64,000 nucleotides of DNA. Source: Perkinsela sp. CCAP 1560/9 (Eukaryota > Protista > Euglenozoa: Kinetoplastea). Positions 1,224 through 50,139 of the stretch are shown one piece after another. The notes below the pieces were generated by a model that did no database searches, was not told the DNA's origin, and saw only the letters and a list, made by a program, of their open reading frames with translations. Position 1 is the stretch's first letter; the number at the start of each line of letters is the position of its first letter. The stretch lies in NCBI GenBank assembly GCA_965644495.1, contig CBFFSA010000010.1:434001-498000 (forward strand), given 5' to 3'. The position numbers were made by a program, and so were the translations under genes.

Positions 1224-1260
1224 CAACAAGGTACAGAAACTGTATCTTGTACAGAAACTC
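1224..1260 (-). ncRNA. Spliced-leader exon remnant (3' 25 nt), preceded by a partial duplicate of the core (AGTTTCTGTAC)
   Basis: The reverse complement of 1224-1248 is AAGATACAGTTTCTGTACCTTGTTG, matching the kinetoplastid/diplonemid SL core CAGTTTCTGTA...TTG. Confidence 0.8.
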
Positions 1261-3740
1261 TCCCGATCTGTAATGTGGGTCACTTCCCCAGATGTGTCCT
1301 TGAGGAGTAGGCTCTCGTCGGGCACCCCAATGGTATACCCCACGATCCCCAGGATGTCTGAAAAGGAGGTTGAAGCTTCGCAAGGAACTCGAATTCGTCC
1401 GGCCCGTTCGGGGCCAAGGTCTAGGGTAATGAGTATACCTTCGCCCCGTAATCCAGGGGGCTGCCCTCCTCGGGCGCGTAAATTGGCGCGAAGCTATGCG
1501 GGTGTGATCCTGGATCTGGTCCCGGTGTAGGGTTAAAGTGGAAGGCAGGGGTGTGGAAGTGGTGCTGTGGAGGTAGAGAAGTGGTGCTGTGGAGGCCATG
1601 GAGGATTTGCTTCGAGAGTGGGGAATCCTGCTGTAGGGAGTTGCGCTGCCACGAAGAAACATTCTTTGAAGAGGCTCAGGAACTCCGACCAGCCTTCTCG
1701 TTTGAGGGCGTAGGCGCCCCGGGCATGACTTCCCAAAAGTTCGTACAATGCTTTCCGAGTGCGCTTCGGGGCGTGTACGTTTAGGATGTGGGCCTGCAGG
1801 CCTATGAGGTGTTGATGTGCGGCTCCCCAGAATGTCTGAAAAAGAGGTTAATGCGTCACATGCAGACCAGTTGGGTAGCCGTTGGGGCTTTCCCTAACGC
1901 GGCCTCACAGAGGTTGCGTGGGGCTGCTCGTTGGCTTACATGCCCTGGGGTCGGCCCTGTAGGGCGTTCTTCACCTTGGCCTGCATGCCCTCGGCCTTGT
2001 GCTCGAAGGGGATGGTCCCCAGGAAATCTGCCGTCAAGAGGTGATTGGAAAACGGTATTTTTCCCAAGGAGTCCATCCCCCGGAGCAATGCCTCAGCACA
2101 TGCCAGGACGGCTGTGCCGACTTGGGCATCGGCCACTTTAGTGACCCGGGGCTCGTGGGTCCTTACGATGTAGTTCCATCGAGGACTCCCACAGAGTCTT
2201 AAGAGGGGCAAGATACACTGCCAGCTACTGTCCTTAAGTTTCCCCAAGAAGGAGATTACCTTCGGCGCCTTGGAGAGCACCCATTCTTCTTCCCTAGCCT
2301 AACCTAGCCTCCCTAGCCTAGGGCTTCCGCGCATACCTTGGGTTCACCCGCGAAGGTGACGCCGTCCAGGTACGCCCAGACCTTCAGCGTGCCTGTGAAG
2401 TTGGCCGCCACTCTGGCAATTGCCCCCTGGATCCCTATGGCAAATAGGATGGGAGCCATGGGGTCACCTTGCTTGACCCCACTTGAGTTCGTGATGGATT
2501 GGCCTTCCCCAAGGTGAAGCGTACGTGTAGTACCGTAGCTGAAGAGGGTGATGCCCTCAATGCGGAAAAGTTTCGGATCCCCCCTTACCGCCCTAAAAAT
2601 TGCCGACCGTGAGATGCTATTAAAAGCGTTCTCGAGGTCTGCCGCCACGATGACCTCCTTCGGCCTGTCCCTGAAGTGCTGTCGCACATTATAAATTATG
2701 TGCTCACACCCCTGCGTGTATTGGGCTCCAAACTGGATGCCCTGAAAGCAAGTGGGGAGATGTTCCCGGATTTTCTCCAGGCAAGGAGCCCCGCCACCTT
2801 GAGGACGCACTCTCCCATGGCGATGGGCCTGTAGGAAGAGTGGTGCCCCGCCGGGGAGTCCGGTTTGGTGAATAGTTTTAGGGACGCCCCCGTGAGCCGT
2901 TCCCTCATTGAGGGGAGTAGGGAGTTTGTCATAATCCCGTGGATTATCCACGTGATACAGTCGCAGGGTCCACCTTCCATGAGGACTGGGACAAGCAGTT
3001 CCTTGGTCCATCCCGTAGGTCCGGGGGGCGCGGATAGGGGCCAGGCTTGGGGCCTTCCTGGCCACATCGGCGGGGGAGGGTAGGGTTCCGTGTCGGTCCC
3101 TATTGTACCTGAATTTCCCCGCAATGTAGGGCCCGCCTGTGGGATGTAGTCGCTTAGCCTGTTCTAGGGCCGCCGTGGGATTGGCCGGTGGATTGAGGGG
3201 CGCCTCCATCGTTTTGGCCGTCCTAGAGAAGCAACCCGCCCTGCACAATTCCTCCACCCGTTTTTTGACGGACCACGGGGGGCCGTTGGCCTGACTCGGG
3301 GATGGAGCCAAGGTCTTCGAACTTATTCAGAGTTCGCGTGCTAGCTGTCGTTGCAACTCCGCCTATCCTCAGGGAGGTGTAGGAAACGTTTTACGGCTAA
3401 AAGGAGGTTCCAGGCCATCTCAACTTTGTCCCCCCCTGACTTATTGAGAAAGTCATGACATACACTGGCAGTGTATTCCTTCCATGCCGGGCATTGGACC
3501 GCGTAAAGTTTACTCGGGGACCCCCTCCCAAGAAGCTCCGCTAAGCTCTCGGAGGAGGGGGCTTGCCCACGCTTCTCAATTGGAGCGCCCTGGGCTATTG
3601 GGGTGGTTTGCTGGCCTTCTGTAATGCGAGATGATTCCACCATCACCGATGACCCCTTATCTAATGTCGTCCGTTGGGGAGTGCCGGTGACATTTGCTTC
3701 CGCCGCGATGGCTGGCTTCCGGCATACCCCCCCAGAGCAG
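1261..3740 (-). mobile_element. Degenerate, 5'-truncated CRE/SLACS/CZAR-like non-LTR retrotransposon (RT plus probable RLE remnant)
   Basis: RT motifs YRPIAMGE, QFG, AADLENAFNSISR, GVKQGDPMAPILF and AYLDG (YLDD decayed) are split over frameshifted ORFs 2313-3311 and 2696-3124. LLRLCGSPRWNYIVRTH follows in 1936-2280. The 3' end abuts the SL remnant. Confidence 0.85.
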
Positions 3741-33137: not shown

Positions 33138-33510
33138 TTGTATAAGTACAATTTGCCCTATGCATTTTTTGGCCGTCATCCTCATTTCACAAACACTTCC
33201 GGGAGCTCAACGTCACGTGCGGCAAAGGTAAGGGGCGCATTTCTTCCACAGGAATACGAACTTGAAAAGTTTATTAGCGATGTCGAAAGCCCACATGAGT
33301 CGTCGAGCACTGCCACACCTGCATATGCGTGGGATGGAGTGGTAGGCAATGACGAGGGGGAAGTTATTGTCATTGCTTGGTATGGTCGAAAATTGTGTGG
33401 GACATTGCATTGGGAACATACACGATCTGTAAAACGTTTGGATGTTTCCAACAATGCGTTGAGTGGCACTGTCGATTTTTCTTTATTGCCTCGAAGTTTG
33501 GAGAGATTAT
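33138..33510 (+). pseudogene. LRR gene truncated at the SL/retroelement junction
   Basis: AKVRGAFLPQEYEL motif, cap and one LRR, ending at LPRSLERL|. Confidence 0.88.
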
Positions 33511-33590
33511 AAAGATCATAAAGATTATAAAGATTTATAATGATTATACTTATAATCATACTTATAAAGATTATAAAGATCATAAAGATA
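33508..33590 (+). repeat. Reiterated (T/C)ATAAAGAT units derived from the SL 5' edge
   Basis: TTATAAAGATCATAAAGATTATAAAGAT...; the last unit runs into the SL core. Confidence 0.85.
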
Positions 33591-33609
33591 CAGTTTCTGT
33601 ACCTTGTTG
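33584..33609 (+). ncRNA. SL exon remnant at the 5' boundary of the retroelement
   Basis: AAAGATACAGTTTCTGTACCTTGTTG. Confidence 0.82.
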
Positions 33610-33616
33610 TCTTTTG

Positions 33617-33640
33617 TACTAACTGTTATCACCCCTACAG
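33617..33640 (+). promoter_or_regulatory. Putative branch point and 3' splice acceptor immediately before the retroelement ATG
   Basis: TACTAAC at 33617-33623, CCCCTACAG ending at 33640 and ATG at 33645. Confidence 0.5.
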
Positions 33641-33644
33641 GGGC

Positions 33645-36600
33645 ATGTCACTCCACACCACTACCTCTGCCCCCCAGGCGCAAGGCGACCTCCCTCGAGG
33701 ATCTGCTGGCGCAAAACCTTCACGCAAGCATACCTTCAACTTCACACAAAAAAGTGCGATTTCTGTAAAAATAAGACACTCAACTTCCACATCATGGCTC
33801 TATTTCCCTGACATCCACGCGGCGGCTTGTTTTCTAACCAAGAAGAGGCACTTCAATGCCGAAATTTCAGCGGAACTTTCCTTAGCACGAACCCTTGAAA
33901 CAGGAGCAAAGCGGTCTGATGGTATATTAGTAGAAAAATGCACTTTACAAGACGTAATGAACGAGGAAGCATGCGAACATTTCGTATTCCGCGAAATTGC
34001 ACCGCCACACAGGATATTCCGGCACACTAGCTGGGCGACAGCACACGCAGACGCATCTCTACAGCTAGATAAACAGTACTCTTGTCCTGGAACCCTTGGA
34101 CGCACCATCAAGAAGAAACTGGCTGGGAACAACATCTCGGGACTTGCGGCGTTCGACCTAACCCACGTCCACACTAAGGAAGTACACGATGAAGGCTCTT
34201 GGGAAAAGGCTCTTGGGAGAACTAGGATTGAGTACGGCGAACCTTTCCTGATCGGGAAGCCCAACCAGGCGGCGGGACAAGGAACGCGGACAGTGCGGCA
34301 ACAACCTTGTGCCCACCGCTGCTTGAATAAACGCACCTGTCTCCACCCGTGTTGCAAAGTTGGGATGGAACCCGAGCTCACCAACAATCGTCCAGAGGAA
34401 CCGGGTGGCCACGCACCAAACAGAAGTCATCCGCTGCCTCGTACAACGGACGAACCAACCCCCAACCACGAAGCTCGACCCAGCCGTACTCAACCGTGTG
34501 CTCATCGATGTTTGAACAAGCGCATATGCCTCCACCAATGTTGCAAGATCAGTATTGACCCCGAACCTATGGACCACCCCTCACCTCACCCAGATATGCA
34601 GAGAGCAGATAGTGCAATCCAAAAGTCTGATGCCAGGCCTGATGCTACACCATGGCTTCGAGATGAACAAACGTCTAGCACATGCGCGACACCTCGACGA
34701 TCATGTAAACACATTTGCCAAAACAAGCAACAATGTAAGCACATGTGTTGCAAGATTGGGGTAAAGATCGACCCTAGAAGACTTGAATCCCTAAACGAAG
34801 AAACAACAGTAATTGCCACCCCTCCCTCACCCGCCCCACGCACTCAGACACCGCCAGACAGAAATCTGCATCACATAACAACGTCGGAAGAACAAGAACT
34901 CTCGCGCAGGCCCTGCAAGCACGTATGCCGCAACAAGGCCGAATGCAAACACCAATGTTGTAAGGAGGGAGTACTCAGCCCCCCTCAGGACGCTCGGCAG
35001 GAACCCACCCGCTGGAGCCTACGCAACCTCTTCTCGTGGAATCTGTCTAACAACGAGACAAACGGACAAGCACCTGCTGGTCACAGCGAAAGATCCGCAT
35101 CTTCTGAGCCCCAAAGACAGGTAGAAACCAAAATAGGCGCCGCACGGAGTTCACCACGAGATCAGCGCCACGAAAGACGCTTCACAAATGCCTCCGAAGA
35201 AACCCGCATCAATCAGTCTCCACGACAACCAGCACATCCACCGGTGAACAACGTAACCTCGGAACCAGCGCCAACCTTCGGAACTGAAAGTAACACACAG
35301 ACGCTTACCCAGACTCTCCCACCGCGGGGCGGACCACGGCAGACCCACGGGCCGAATGACAGCACGATCCTGAACTCACAGAGGAATAGATCTCGAAATG
35401 AAAACATATTAGACACCGAGACGGCTGAATACTTGTTAAGCACCATGCGTACGATCGAAGGAGGGCGGGTCATGATAAGCCTCTCACAGGACCAATGGCA
35501 GCTGGCAATAAAGAAGGCCATGGATAGATGTAAAAAGTACTTAAAGCCTGCATCAACCCCGAGCGAAGCCCTACTACATACGGAATTACTGACAGCTTGC
35601 ATGGCGGTCTCGGTTTATGAAGTTGTACGGGAACTCGACCCCACCAAAGGGTTCAAATTGCGCTCCAAAATTGGCCATGCGAAACGCCCCACACGACCCC
35701 TTAGCTATGACCGCTCTGCGAAGCAACTAGCAGGACACATCCGTCAACTGAAACGTACTCTTTCCTTTACCCACGGACGCTCAGAAAGGGACCGCTTGAT
35801 CGGCAACATAAAAGAAGCGACCAAAGCGCATAAGCTGTACACGGAAGAAGCGAAACTAGTCAAACAAGAACGAGAGAAACGCTGGATGATGGACAGGTTC
35901 CAAAGAAACCCTTGGACAGCAGCCGGAGAGTGTCTTGACAAGAACGAGCAACTGGTAAATCAGCCGGCAACCTTTCCAGACTGCTCGCAAGCAGCTATCG
36001 AAACATTTTTCCAAGAATTGTTAAGCACAGACACGGAAGATCATAGTCTACCTCCAACAAACCTCCTTGGCCTGGATCTAGAGAATGCAATGGAATGGGA
36101 AGCAATCGACGTACCAACCATAGCAGTGGCAATCTCCTCGAAACGCCCCTCGGCTGCCCCAGGCTCCGATACCGTGGGAAACGCATTTCTTCGACGCTGC
36201 GAAGAGCTCTACCCGTTCATCGCGCAAGTCTTCAATGACGTACTGAAGCATTCGGTCAGCCCTCCCTATTGGAAACAGGCCGTCACCCGACTCATTCACA
36301 AAGGCGGAGCTCCCAACCAATTGTCCAACTGGAGACCCATCAGTCTTACGAGCTGCCTTGGTAAGTTACTCCACTCCATTATTGGCCACAGAATCTTGAG
36401 CCATGCTGTGACGACAGGAATAATTGACACAACCATACAAAAAGGATTTTTGCCAAACGTAAATGGAACTATCGAGCATACCCAGTCACTCTGTGAACTA
36501 TTGGACTTTCAACGACAGCATAAACGACAATACTGCCTTGGTCAATTTGACTTAAAGAACGCGTTTGGTTCTCTCCCACACTCCATTCTCTTTCAAGTCC

Positions 36601-38369
36601 TAACGTGGGCAAATGTATCACCTCAAATCATCGCGTACATCCGCTCCCTATACCATGATGCGACTATCCGGATCAAATGTTCGGAAGGGCTGACCCAACA
36701 CATCCCCGTCAAACGAGGTGTTCTCCAGGGCGACACACTATCCCCCGTACTATTCAATCTCGCCATAGAAGTGGTTCTACGACATCTCCGATCGAGCTTC
36801 CCTAGCTATGGTATTAAATGGGGCAACCAAGAGTCGTTCTTAAAAGCCTTTGCAGACGATCTGGCTATCATCACGAACTCGGCTGAAAAAATGCAACACG
36901 TGACGAACGCCCTGATGAACATGCTTTCCAGGTTAGGCATGCGCCTTAACGTACCGAAATGTCGTCTCCAACACATGTCTGTAGCAGAAGGCGGATATAA
37001 GACCCACAGACCCCGTATCTTGGCATACGGTGAGAGTATTCCCAACGTTTGCGACAAAGGAAGTCAGTTCCTAGGTATGACACTCGCGCCGGGGACCCAA
37101 CAAGGGAAAGTACTGTTCAAAAGTCTCCTAAAGCAGCTACGATTTTGGTTGAACAATGTATCCAATAGTGCCCTAGATACCCCCGCTCGTCTCTGGGCCT
37201 ATAATAACGTAATCATATCTCGCCTGCGATATGTGCTCACGGTCAATCCAGGAATGACACTAAACTTTATCCTTCGACTACAAAAATATGCGACGAGACA
37301 CATTCGAAAATGGATAAACATGGCCAAAACAGCTACGAGCGAAGTTCTGTACTCTGAACGCGGCTGGGCTCTCACCAGCCTGTCTAAGCTTTGGTTACTC
37401 TGCACAGGCACAGCAGTTGAACAGATGAAAAAATCTCGTGATCCAGCAGTGCAACAAGCGCTGAGATATCGCATCCGTCGTGAACACGACAAACGTTCTT
37501 CCGGACAAGTGCGACCAGTCGTCGAGTTGTACGACCGCAGTGGAAATCACGCATCGACACGGCAGTACATTGAACATGAATACGAAAGACATCTCTCAGA
37601 AGCTGTGCAGCGTCGAGCACCAATCGCGGGGCAGTGGTTTCGCATGGCTACAGAAGACGACCTCGCGAAAGACTTCGCTGCTGCTCTGTGCAATATTAAA
37701 AGTACGTCGCTCTCCAGACTTGCTTCATCTGTTCTGACACAGACACCGCTTCCGACCCGATCCGCCTTACACCGCTGGGGCCTCAGTTACCACACGAACC
37801 GTAAATGCCCCATTTGCTCAGAAGACGTACAAACTGTGCGCCACGTTCTAACAGGCTGCAAGGCCGCCCTGCAACAGGGGCGGTATACCTTCCGTCACAA
37901 CCTCATTCTACACGCCCTTGCAGATGCTATTCGACAATCCCCCGAAACCGCACAGTATCACTTTGACCTCGCTCACCATCAGAATCCGCCAACCTGGCTG
38001 AGCGGGCAAGAAACGTCCCTCCGACCTGATGGATGGGTCCAACTTAAGAACGGTTCTGAGTTCATACTAGAACTGACATCTCCGTGGGAGGAAAACTTTA
38101 TCTCCTCACACGAACGGAAGATGCAGAAGTATGGACATATGTATCTACAACGGAAAATGTCGAACCCAGCCACTTTTCTCCTGGCCATTGAAGTAGGTGC
38201 CAGAGGAAAGCTCAACAGCTCAACTCGAGCACTGAACTCCCTTTTTGGTGGAAACAAGACCACCGCCTCGCGATGTCGTCAGCATATGGTAACAAGAGCC
38301 CTTAGTGGCAGTTTCAAAATTTTTAATAATCGCGGCATTGAGCAGTGGAGTGAGGGCACGTGCTGGTGA
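33645..38369 (+). mobile_element. Intact single-ORF RLE-type non-LTR retrotransposon (HERO/NeSL-like): 4 Cys/His fingers, RT, CCHC and restriction-like endonuclease. The element spans ~33610-38470.
   Basis: NWRPISL, QKGF, DLKNAFGSLPH, GVLQGDTLSPVLF, AFADDL, CPIC...HVLTGC, GRYTFRHN, LRPD, ELTSPWEEN, RKMQKY and IEVGARG. The first 35 aa of the track ORF are translated repeat and SL sequence. Confidence 0.95.
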
Positions 38370-38470
38370 AGAGTTTTAAAAACCTAGGAGAAACTCGTTT
38401 TGTGCAAGGATTGCGTGCTAGTCATGCATCTTCTAGGTATCAATCTCTGCAGGTAAACTGCATGAATCAA

Positions 38471-38510
38471 AAAGATACAGTTTCTGCACCATGTTGGTAC
38501 ATTTTGCTAG
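38471..38510 (+). ncRNA. SL exon remnant plus a 14-nt GT...AG spacer
   Basis: AAAGATACAGTTTCTGCACCATGTTG|GTACATTTTGCTAG; TTG|GTA matches the SL exon/intron junction. Confidence 0.82.
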
Positions 38511-38760
38511 TCCTTCCTTTCTTTTCCCGGAAACGGGCACACATTTTCTCTTTAAATGCCCGTTTCCGGCTGACGGCTAGCAGGGACTGTCCCTCTTTGT
38601 CGTGGAAGTAGGGGACGTACTTTCGACTTTTCACCCCTCCCCGGCTCACTCCTTCAGTGAGTTTTCTTCCCTCCCGGGCCTTTCTTCCTTTCACGCCTTT
38701 CCTTCCCGGGGAGCCATGCGCCATGGTGGCCTCCCTTGAGGACCACTGGGCGTGGCTCTG
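38511..38760 (+). ncRNA. Structured SL-adjacent leader RNA, copy 2
   Basis: Perfect 13-bp stem at 38527-38539/38557-38569, plus three more hairpins homologous to 900-1223. Confidence 0.72.
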
Positions 38761-38783
38761 CCTCGTCTTATCGCGAGGCAGCG

Positions 38784-38926
38784 GTCGGTTGCAGTGCGCC
38801 CCACCGGCTGCGTAAAGAGGTGGTGAGTTGCCTGGACCACCTCTACCGACTGGGGCCGAGTCGGTTGCAGTACGCCCCTCCGGCTGCGTAAAAAGAGGGC
38901 GAGTTACCCGGACCCCCTCTACCGAC
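38784..38926 (+). repeat. Two structured 67-nt units (76-bp period)
   Basis: GTCGGTTGCAGT...GGCTGCGTAAA...TCTACCGAC at 38784-38850 and 38860-38926. Confidence 0.8.
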
Positions 38927-39029
38927 AGAGTCCGTGCCGAATTCTCCTTCGTGCGACGTCTGTTGTGAGCGGGTCATGTGCCGATGATATCGGCCGTCGC
39001 ATCAAGGGCTGTATCTCTGCGTCAATGAG

Positions 39030-39119
39030 CGCATGAACATCAACAAGATGCCATCAAATGTGTTTAGCGGGGAATTACAAGTACATTTCGAGCATCTTCC
39101 AACTGGGGTCACTATACTA
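39030..39119 (+). pseudogene. Short LRR fragment ending at an SL remnant
   Basis: SNVFSGELQVHFEHLPTGVTIL|. Confidence 0.5.
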
Positions 39120-49096: not shown

Positions 49097-50139
49097 TTAG
49101 TAAAGTAACTGCAGTCAGACCGGAAATGTTGATGTGATCGCATGCAGTTCTTTAAACCTCCGGGGAAATTTCTCGTTCAACGGTTTACCCCGTACCATTT
49201 GAAGTCTTAGTGTTGGGTTTAACGCGTTATCAGGTGAAGTAGAACTGGAAAACCTCCCCGAGAATATGACGAATGTTTTTGCCTCCTACAATGAGTTTTA
49301 TGGAGGACGCGAAATGCGATACCTCCCAAGGACCATGACTGATATCTACTTTTCAATGAATAAGCTACAAGGTCGTGTAGACCTCTCGTCTCTTCCTCCC
49401 AACATTATACAGATTGATATTTAAAGGTGTGTTAAATTGGCAATATATCCCGTCAACCATTGAAGATTTTCTTGCCCGGGTAATCAATTTTCCGGTCATC
49501 TACCATTCGAAGTTCTTCCGTCGACGTTGCGGAATTTCTGTGTTGGGCGGAATGAATTAACAGGAACACCTAATTTTTGTACTCTATCAAGACTCTATGG
49601 CATTCCCATAAACGATAACTTGTTTACAGGACACGCGGACTTTGATCTCTTACCTGTGTGATTAAAGAAATAACGCCCTATTACACGAACGACGAACAGT
49701 GCACCCGAAAACGTACCTCCTCGTATTCGAAATTGGAGCACGAGGTGGTCTGGTAGCCTCCTCAGCGGATATTAATCGGTTGTTTGGAGGGGACGAAGAT
49801 TTGGGGGCTAAATGTCGGGCGTCACTCTCCCGAGCTGCTATCCGTTCCAGCTTCTTATTATGGCATAAGCGTGATTCCCCGCAATGGAGCGATGCAGAGA
49901 CACTGTCCGCATAAGGGATGCACCTAACAGCGTCATATGCGCAAGTTAGTTACATCCTCAAAAAACTCTATCTTAAAAGATATGATATCATCATCATGCG
50001 CAGTTCAACGCTGGTCTTGAAGGCACATTGGATTTGAATCGCGGTCCAAGTGACTTGTTCTATGATGTTAGGGGAACAGGAATCACAGTGAGTAACGGCG
50101 AGCCATTATTTTGTCAGGGGCTCGTATAACCCTACAGGT
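49097..50139 (+). pseudogene. Chimeric LRR pseudogene: 3' part of gene 41433 fused to 3' part of gene 42378
   Basis: 49097-49422 matches ~41647-41952, and 49423-50139 matches ~42630-43027. Contains stops and frameshifts. Confidence 0.9.
49672..49996 (+). mobile_element. 5'-truncated relative of the 33.6-kb retroelement, inserted in the chimeric LRR
   Basis: YLLVFEIGARG...LFGG...KCR...QWS here versus FLLAIEVGARG...LFGG...RCR...QWS. The 3' end is AAAAGATA plus TGATATCATCATCA. No TSD, and ~4 nt of target deleted. Confidence 0.88.

Follow-up and report, generated by a model that had tools for sequence, protein, structure and literature searches.

The window analysed here is a stretch of 64,000 nucleotides (nt) from the kinetoplastid Perkinsela sp. 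CCAP 1560/9, corresponding to C10:434001-498000 of a 21-Mb assembly of 110 contigs, and it contains an intact element of 4.9 kb that begins with a remnant of the host's own spliced leader (SL). The single open reading frame (ORF) of this element, listed with its other features in Table 1, runs from its ATG without interruption to encode a protein of 1574 amino acids. Pfam identified a reverse transcriptase (RT) domain, with the catalytic FADD lying within AFADDL (36846-36863, amino acids 1068-1073); besides this domain, a weak match to zf-RVT was obtained. The C-terminal 190 amino acids align with the endonuclease of solved R2 structures. The aligned region opens with a CCHC knuckle (CX2CX8HX4C; 37806-37859, amino acids 1388-1405), followed by the motifs RHN, RPD, ELT, K and GARG; the R2 counterparts are KPD, D(VT), K and GARGK, with E in the window protein taking the place of D. 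Toward the N-terminus lie four tandem zinc knuckles, a stretch (amino acids 222-440) in which a Pfam scan found no match and which is presumed to form a nucleic-acid-binding domain.

The features found here include an RT with the xADD signature, a C-terminal CCHC knuckle joined to a PD-(D/E)xK endonuclease, dispersed copies that lack long terminal repeats (LTRs) and share a defined 3' end, 5'-truncated copies, and one 10-nt duplication around the copy on contig C12. As predicted from its sequence, the element is an autonomous non-LTR retrotransposon, or long interspersed nuclear element (LINE), of the restriction-like-endonuclease (RLE) type, whose one ORF combines zinc knuckles, RT, a CCHC linker and a PD-(D/E)xK nuclease. 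An earlier note, made from the letters of the window, had described the uninterrupted ORF, two 26-nt repeats of the SL exon with 2 mismatches and the motifs AFADDL, FRHN, LRPD, ELTSP and VGARG, and had set the protein apart from a second RT at 2.3-3.3 kb; all of this was recovered, the two RTs sharing 28% identity over 114 amino acids. The same note proposed a possibly active, site-specific RT-endonuclease. The RT and the endonuclease are indeed intact and possibly active, to judge by sequence, but the unrelated 3' flanks described below do not agree with site specificity.

Table 1. Coordinates of the SL-headed element and of associated features. Positions refer to the window unless a contig is named.
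Feature	Position	Strand	Remarks
9-bp tandem array	33504-33589	+	9.4 units of ATAAAGATY (Tandem Repeats Finder); unit = SL nt 11-19
SL remnant, 5' head of the element	33582-33609	+	SL exon nt 11-38; matches exon of SL RNA gene L034:467-504 (minus strand)
5' untranslated region (UTR)	33610-33644	+	Conserved GTACTAACTGTTA motif, then pyrimidine-rich run; CAG at its end, four bases 5' of ATG
Single ORF, stop codon included	33645-38369	+	
Four tandem zinc knuckles	34308-34964	+	CxHxCxxKxxCxHxCCK; amino acids 222-440; regular-expression scan
RT domain, RVT_1	36297-37079	+	Pfam E = 2.7e-31; amino acids 885-1145
CCHC knuckle and restriction-like endonuclease	37806-38207	+	HMMER alignment to PDB R2 protein 9nl3_A, domain 2
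3' UTR and terminus	38370-38470	+	Window copy reads ...GAATCAAAAA, directly abutting the next SL head
SL remnant heading the next repeat	38471-38496	+	SL nt 13-38, 2 mismatches; outside the element, not a target-site duplication
Non-coding SL-headed repeat (X family)	38497-39119	+	Another SL-headed X copy from 39120
5'-truncated 3' fragment of a diverged relative	49672-49996	+	Encodes endonuclease end ...EIGARGG; ends ...AAAAGATATGATATCA; in leucine-rich-repeat gene; no adjoining SL
Unspliced SL RNA retrocopies	C25:23875-23977, C2:801575-801677, C86:12021-12122, C49:34326-34426, C20:10884-10984		

Spliced-leader sequence at the ends of the element

The 26-mers at 33584-33609 and 38471-38496 differ from each other at 2 positions, and both correspond to nt 13-38 of the SL exon; the window contains their 20-nt core 4 times, where 0.02 occurrences would be expected. 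Because they match the exon of the SL RNA gene given in Table 1, a 38-nt exon followed by a kinetoplastid-type intron start (GTATGAGAAGC), the 26-mers are true SL sequence.

Copies of the family were gathered from the assembly by searches with the first and last 600 nt of the element, and their junctions were then read. Four further near-identical full-length copies were found (C33, C1 at 2.44 Mb, C7 and C12; 97.4-98.7% identity to the window copy), along with subfamilies that have diverged to 71-75% identity. Among the five near-identical copies only that in the window has an intact ORF, the longest ORFs of the other four measuring 632-877 amino acids; two copies of a 72%-identity subfamily contain uninterrupted ORFs of 1613 amino acids. 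The five full-length copies and the 5'-truncated 3' fragments have a common ...GAATATCA end. Upstream of the SL head, the C33 and C1 copies have in common 930 nt that abut the head without a gap and come from the 3' part of another element, which encodes RNase H; their 3' flanks differ. An SL-headed copy can thus also travel inside a composite. In these 930 nt (L002/L003) the RNase H-like domain is followed by one CKHKCKNKSTCGHKCCK knuckle. This unusual zinc-knuckle motif is also that of the four knuckles in the N-terminus of the window ORF and is thus common to different element families of the genome.

A DNA-encoded SL remnant that matches the host's own SL begins all nine of the independent 5' ends (those of the window copy, C33/C1 counted as one event, C7, C12, two 72%-identity copies on C1, C3, C20, and the P0003 element introduced below), and the DNA upstream is unrelated. 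The remnant starts at SL nt 10-14, and once at nt 21. In the window copy the 5' UTR follows the last base of the SL directly; in C12 the two are separated by 1 nt, and in C33, C1 and C7 by a 12-nt AATTAATTTTCA. The 72% subfamily displays the same alternation of long and short forms, and across it and the 98-99% subfamily the joins are direct or carry an additional 1 or 12-13 nt. Four bases 5' of the ATG, sister subfamilies have TG where the window copy has CAG. The 9-bp tandem array, which sits between a leucine-rich-repeat gene fragment and the SL head of the window copy, may reflect an RT that stuttered, or jumped templates repeatedly, on reaching the 5' end of its RNA. A further idea, that the 5' UTR contains a degenerate relic of an older SL, was dropped when the local alignment scores were equalled by 30-90% of shuffles.

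The 3' ends present a different picture. Sister copies terminate in ...CTGCATGAATATCA (...CATGATAAACAAAA in the 72% subfamily); a short run of A or a TAT comes next, and then unrelated sequence. Only one of 12 independent 3' junctions, that of the window copy, is followed by SL sequence; the other 11 adjoin unrelated DNA. Even in the window, the downstream SL remnant heads a separate, non-coding repeat, the X family, and the same "SL + GTACATTTTGCTAG..." head is present at the unrelated loci L035, L037, L038 and L060. Since one X copy is followed immediately by another, the region is a head-to-tail stack. We considered whether X might be a non-autonomous partner of the LINE and rejected this, as the X 3' end (...CACTATACTA) is unrelated to that of the LINE. 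The C12 copy is enclosed by a 10-nt duplication (9/10 identical), found directly 5' of the SL head and directly 3' of the element end; because this duplication lies outside the SL head, the SL lies within the inserted unit. A candidate duplication for the C1 copy at 2.44 Mb was not accepted, since its match lies 45 nt upstream, within the shared 930-nt composite. Logan contigs over 33150-39100 that skip part of the stretch (e.g., 33608 to 38497) were likewise set aside as evidence of an empty site, their short side of 25-27 nt being the SL repeat itself. Both full SL RNA genes of the assembly, with promoter, exon and intron, are uninterrupted.

Insertion inside SL RNA exons, with SL on both sides, as is characteristic of CRE-type elements, is therefore not seen at the other 11 junctions, nor is targeting of SL1 or U2 genes of the NeSL type, the flanks being unrelated or AT-rich. 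Judged from these sequences, the SL at the front of the element is part of the element's RNA rather than of its target, and integration is not SL-specific. The earlier note had presented the element as bracketed by SL copies, which is literally true of the window copy and of no other. It had further taken the 26-mers as a target-site duplication and proposed a convergent origin of SL targeting, to be refuted by random or microsatellite flanks at other full-length copies. Such flanks are what we find: the other 3' flanks are random, (GT)n lies on both sides of a copy in a related family, the C12 duplication shows the SL remnant to be part of the insert, and the downstream SL is the head of a different repeat family. 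Nor does the diverged relative at 49672-49996 end at the SL edge, as had been thought; it reads AAAAGATA and then TGATATCA + TCATCA, which resembles the family's own ...GAATATCA terminus, not CAGTTTCTG.

Source of the spliced-leader head

We consider it probable (roughly 0.72) that the SL head comes from an SL-bearing, most likely trans-spliced RNA template, with no targeting of SL genes. The reverse-transcribed template would carry the host SL at its 5' end, most likely through trans-splicing of a read-through transcript. Synthesis of complementary DNA, or 5' joining, would then halt about 10-14 nt short of the cap, such that every new copy would be born with a head of SL nt ~11-38. Integration would be independent of SL sequence, taking place at AT-rich or unrelated sites and, in related families, at microsatellites, and end-to-end template jumps of the RT would produce both the head-to-tail stacks and the upstream 9-bp stutter array. 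Because TG, the last dinucleotide of the SL remnant, is often used as an acceptor in Perkinsela, a fresh SL could splice onto an old remnant and regenerate the same junction in each round. Acceptor dinucleotides described for Perkinsela are AG (27%), TG (26%) and AT (15%) (PMC5601477 and its Supplementary Notes).

Two related families bear upon the source of the head. The P0003 family (L064; 43% amino acid identity, same SL) is arranged as (GT)n, then SL nt 13-38 plus element, then (GT)n. The P0008 family (32% amino acid identity, 1850 amino acids) was found in metagenome contigs of another kinetoplastid, which has a canonical ...ACGCTATAAAAGTTACAG...TACTTTATTG leader. At L079 two SL remnants (ACGCTATAAAAGTTACAG...TACTTTATTG, SL nt 6-39) lie 5' of the P0008 ATG; at L075 a shorter remnant follows an A-run, and its SL-UTR junction differs by six bases from that of L079. 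The 3' end of P0008 runs into (ATTTTT)n. In both hosts, then, the head corresponds to the SL of the organism in which the element resides, which favors a sequence acquired from host RNA over one inherited from long ago.

The host itself is placed by a DHX15-type helicase of the window, whose closest named, near-full-length matches are in the PhM-4 and PhF-6 transcriptomes (52% identity, 94% coverage), which we take to be from the strains of a study of free-living Prokinetoplastina. These organisms are treated in PMC7859406. On the helicase matches, the host is judged to be a prokinetoplastid. Leucine-rich-repeat genes are found throughout the window, which has 46.9% G+C; published Perkinsela has hundreds of such genes and about 47% G+C (PMC5601477). 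The genome also agrees with published Perkinsela in its 38-nt SL, its ~500 SL fragments and its one or two intact SL genes (PMC5601477, Supplementary Notes 1.2-1.4).

An SL 25-mer occurs 505 times in the genome, against only two full SL RNA genes, arranged in tandem (C1:661237-661709). We read the context of the SL at a sample of ~40 loci, many of which consist of poly(A), SL nt 1-5 to 38, a pyrimidine-rich 5' UTR and an ATG. Five promoter-less retrocopies of unspliced SL RNA were also identified, each comprising the exon from nt 3-5 plus the intron to the 3' end. These two kinds of locus indicate that capped, SL-bearing RNAs are routinely reverse-transcribed in this genome. The poly(A)-type loci include head-to-tail retrocopies of trans-spliced, polyadenylated mRNAs at L039-L052 (e.g., C1:1442300-1443320 and C2:559180-561650) and at L063:6860-6930, and in about one third of them the same AATTATTT octamer directly follows the SL, though the downstream genes differ. 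Nested partial SL repeats are seen at L048 (C2:1477350-1477700), at L014 and in the window at 1244-1265 (minus strand); they take the form of a full SL remnant to which its own final 16 and final 10 nt are appended, or of one preceded by SL nt 22-33. Their breakpoints follow AG or TG and recall RT stutter or the relict SLs of dinoflagellates.

The 2017 Perkinsela genome paper had noticed part of this. It describes a 38-nt SL and 531 SL-like sequences, 24 of them next to retrotransposon-like sequences (PMC5601477, Supplementary Notes 1.2-1.3). The arrangement was called "reminiscent of SLACS" but not SLACS-like, and "worthy of further investigation" (PMC5601477). The fragments were taken for decaying SL genes and the neighboring elements for ingi-like ones, and the link between them was left open (PMC5601477). 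In our sample, by contrast, the SL fragments are the 5' heads of retrocopies, and the family studied here is an RLE LINE.

Alternative sources of the head were weighed against a trans-spliced template. According to one, which we regard as unlikely, the head is a fossil: a single ancestral trans-spliced capture fixed SL nt ~11-38, which has since been inherited via read-through or internally initiated transcripts. The roughly common SL start of all copies (nt 10-14) is consistent with this, as are the lack of any SL-less master copy in the 21-Mb assembly and the C33/C1 pair, in which the SL head was copied as internal DNA of a longer composite. However, a fossil head would require at least three independent losses of 11-13 nt, each starting exactly at the last base of the SL, in two subfamilies, and the variable SL-UTR junctions appear to fit repeated re-addition of the SL better than one inherited head. 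Moreover, the 32%-identical family in another species bears that species' own SL variant, and the unrelated X family displays the same pattern with junctions at AG sites.

A second alternative, that the SL is gained during reverse transcription when the RT, having copied the element RNA to its 5' end, jumps to a free SL exon or another SL-bearing RNA at its 3' end, seems less probable still. End-to-end template jumping is an established property of the R2 RT. The element-side junctions are variable and do not all follow AG or TG, and there are many stutter arrays and nested partial repeats of the SL (33504-33589, L048, L014 and the C7 flank), in keeping with such jumps. On the other hand, an SL-bearing transcript of a retrotransposon is on record from Perkinsela, as the product of reverse transcription PCR on an L1Tc-like element with a 5' SL (PMC5601477, Supplementary Note 1.2). 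A jump would also require an abundant RNA ending exactly at the SL 3' end, whereas the SL on every mRNA is already explained by trans-splicing. That the element is instead an SL-site-specific one, inserted into an SL exon copy with duplication of 26 nt as a convergent counterpart of CRE/SLACS/CZAR and NeSL-1, is scarcely credible: SL nt 13-38 does lie on both sides of the window copy, and remnants do start at nt 11-14, close to the nt 11/12 position at which CRE elements interrupt SL RNA genes, but the junctions, duplication, (GT)n flanks, separate X heads and intact SL RNA genes set out above all contradict it, and the 26-mers differ at 2/26 positions in an element 97-99% identical to its sisters.

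Several observations weigh against a trans-spliced template as well. Besides the missing SL-less master copy, a search for target-site duplications in the other full-length copies gave only that of C12 as convincing, the others being ambiguous. Two junction variants would need acceptors that are neither AG nor TG (CA and TC) if they derive from the long form. The RLE and X families start near SL nt 11, whereas the poly(A)-type retrocopies reach nt 1-5, a difference for which a trans-spliced template does not account. Finally, no public RNA run containing the stretch was found, and trans-splicing of the element itself is what we infer.

More tentatively, and in our estimate with odds somewhat against it, the trans-spliced template may be extended to a general account. 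An RLE LINE lineage restricted to Euglenozoa would spread via SL-trans-spliced, mRNA-like intermediates, with the TG-ending remnant serving as a built-in acceptor for the next SL, such that neither a promoter nor a specific target would be needed. RT jumps would then explain the stacks and most of the >500 SL fragments in prokinetoplastid genomes.

Phylogenetic position and comparison with known elements

The RT domains of 49 proteins were analyzed with IQ-TREE over 424 columns, and quick and careful runs agreed. The references were R2 proteins anchored to PDB entries and oomycete RNase H-bearing elements, with no named CRE, HERO, R4, NeSL-1 or R5 sequence included; the other RT family of the window served as outgroup, which places two long branches at the root and makes the root unsure. 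The family falls within a clade of 23 proteins (support 100/100) whose members carry no informative names. This clade is sister (91/85) to, and not inside, one made up of oomycete RNase H-domain elements plus spider and bee proteins. Utopia elements of oomycetes have been described with RNase H domains (PMC4640811). The R2 clade is separate (91/84), and the window protein scores 105 bits against the R2 structures versus 466-1074 bits for the true R2 proteins used as the anchor; the family thus does not belong to R2.

The label "HERO/NeSL-like" given earlier agrees with this position, outside R2 proper and next to the clade that holds Utopia-type (NeSL-clade) elements. No trypanosomatid CRE protein was present among the 120 best protein matches and, together with the flanks and the shape of the tree, this points indirectly to a non-CRE family. 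In the ESM Atlas, where CRE, HERO and R4 references were sought, the clusters were all of the unspecific "R2-like RT" kind. Members of the 23-protein clade end in microsatellites ((ATT)n in P0012, (GT)n in P0003 and (ATTTTT)n in P0008), which recall HERO, Togen or Dong and would be compatible with HERO or R4/Dong. With these RLE LINEs the family would share a weak or microsatellite target preference, relatives of the window element lying in (GT)n or ending in (ATT)n or (ATTTTT)n.

The element resembles R2, an RLE LINE specific for 28S ribosomal DNA (rDNA; structures 9nl3, 9dou and 8gh6), in having a single ORF with RT, CCHC linker and C-terminal PD-(D/E)xK nuclease whose motifs can be aligned. 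Messy 5' junctions are also known from R2, as in this family. Unlike R2, the family has four CxHxC...CCK knuckles at its N-terminus, where Pfam finds no C2H2 or Myb domain, and in place of an rDNA target it has an SL remnant at its 5' end. The NeSL clade (NeSL-1 in nematode SL1 genes, Utopia in U2 small nuclear RNA genes; PMC4640811) shares the RLE LINE type. However, Pfam finds neither a Ulp1 protease nor an RNase H domain in the window protein, and the family is not inserted into SL or U2 genes. With the CRE clade of trypanosomatid SL-gene-specific LINEs (CRE1/2, SLACS and CZAR), the family has in common a kinetoplastid host, the RLE type and a physical link to SL sequence; unlike CRE, its SL is only 5' and inside the insert, and its 3' flanks are unrelated.

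A parallel to the head itself is found in the DinoSL-tagged retrogenes of dinoflagellates (PMC6050394, PMC5585692), retrocopies whose 5' ends likewise carry SL remnants encoded in the DNA. Poly(A)-SL junctions and SL repeats that are partial and nested, both present in this genome, add to this likeness. The differences are that the host is a kinetoplastid, that the tag sits on an autonomous LINE and not on a host gene, and that the remnant is cut back to about nt 11.

These results remove a false lead, in that the family does not represent a third, independent origin of SL-gene targeting. They also offer a testable account of the SL fragments, some beside retrotransposons, that the 2017 paper left unexplained. 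LINE copies tagged by the host SL carry their own marker of the RNA intermediate and of how its 5' end was processed. To our knowledge, the elements of kinetoplastids are only ingi/L1Tc, CRE, VIPER and TATE, and the present family appears to be an undescribed RLE LINE lineage for the group, set apart from these. SL tagging as a marker of retroposition from SL-bearing RNA is likewise essentially undescribed for kinetoplastids, although the phenomenon was partly noticed in 2017; SL-marked retroposition, so far dinoflagellate (PMC6050394), would thereby extend to kinetoplastids.

Insertion sites and other repeats

Several copies of the family lie inside leucine-rich-repeat genes, in the window (33400-33503 and 49560-49671), at L022/L071 (C1:2073200-2078600) and at L023 (C2:1089300). 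The phase of insertion in these genes is about equal, after ...LPxxLxxL and before LxxNxFxG, and other copies lie outside such genes. This phase could be due to a target preference or to the mere abundance of leucine-rich-repeat genes. At C1:2477627-2492945 (L033), four SL heads at a spacing of 5092-5093 bp form a tandem array of an SL-headed unit of ~5.1 kb.

The second RT of the window (2313-3311, minus strand), called "CRE-like" earlier, derives from an RLE LINE of 1371 amino acids, of which a full-length relative is found at L063:2716-6831. This LINE has C-terminal CxC...H...C, KPD and PD...VDVT motifs, ends in 22 nt of poly(A) and has almost no named relatives. A protein search yielded 824 first-look candidates for this RT family in the genome, and the RT activity that made the poly(A)-type retrocopies may have come from this family.

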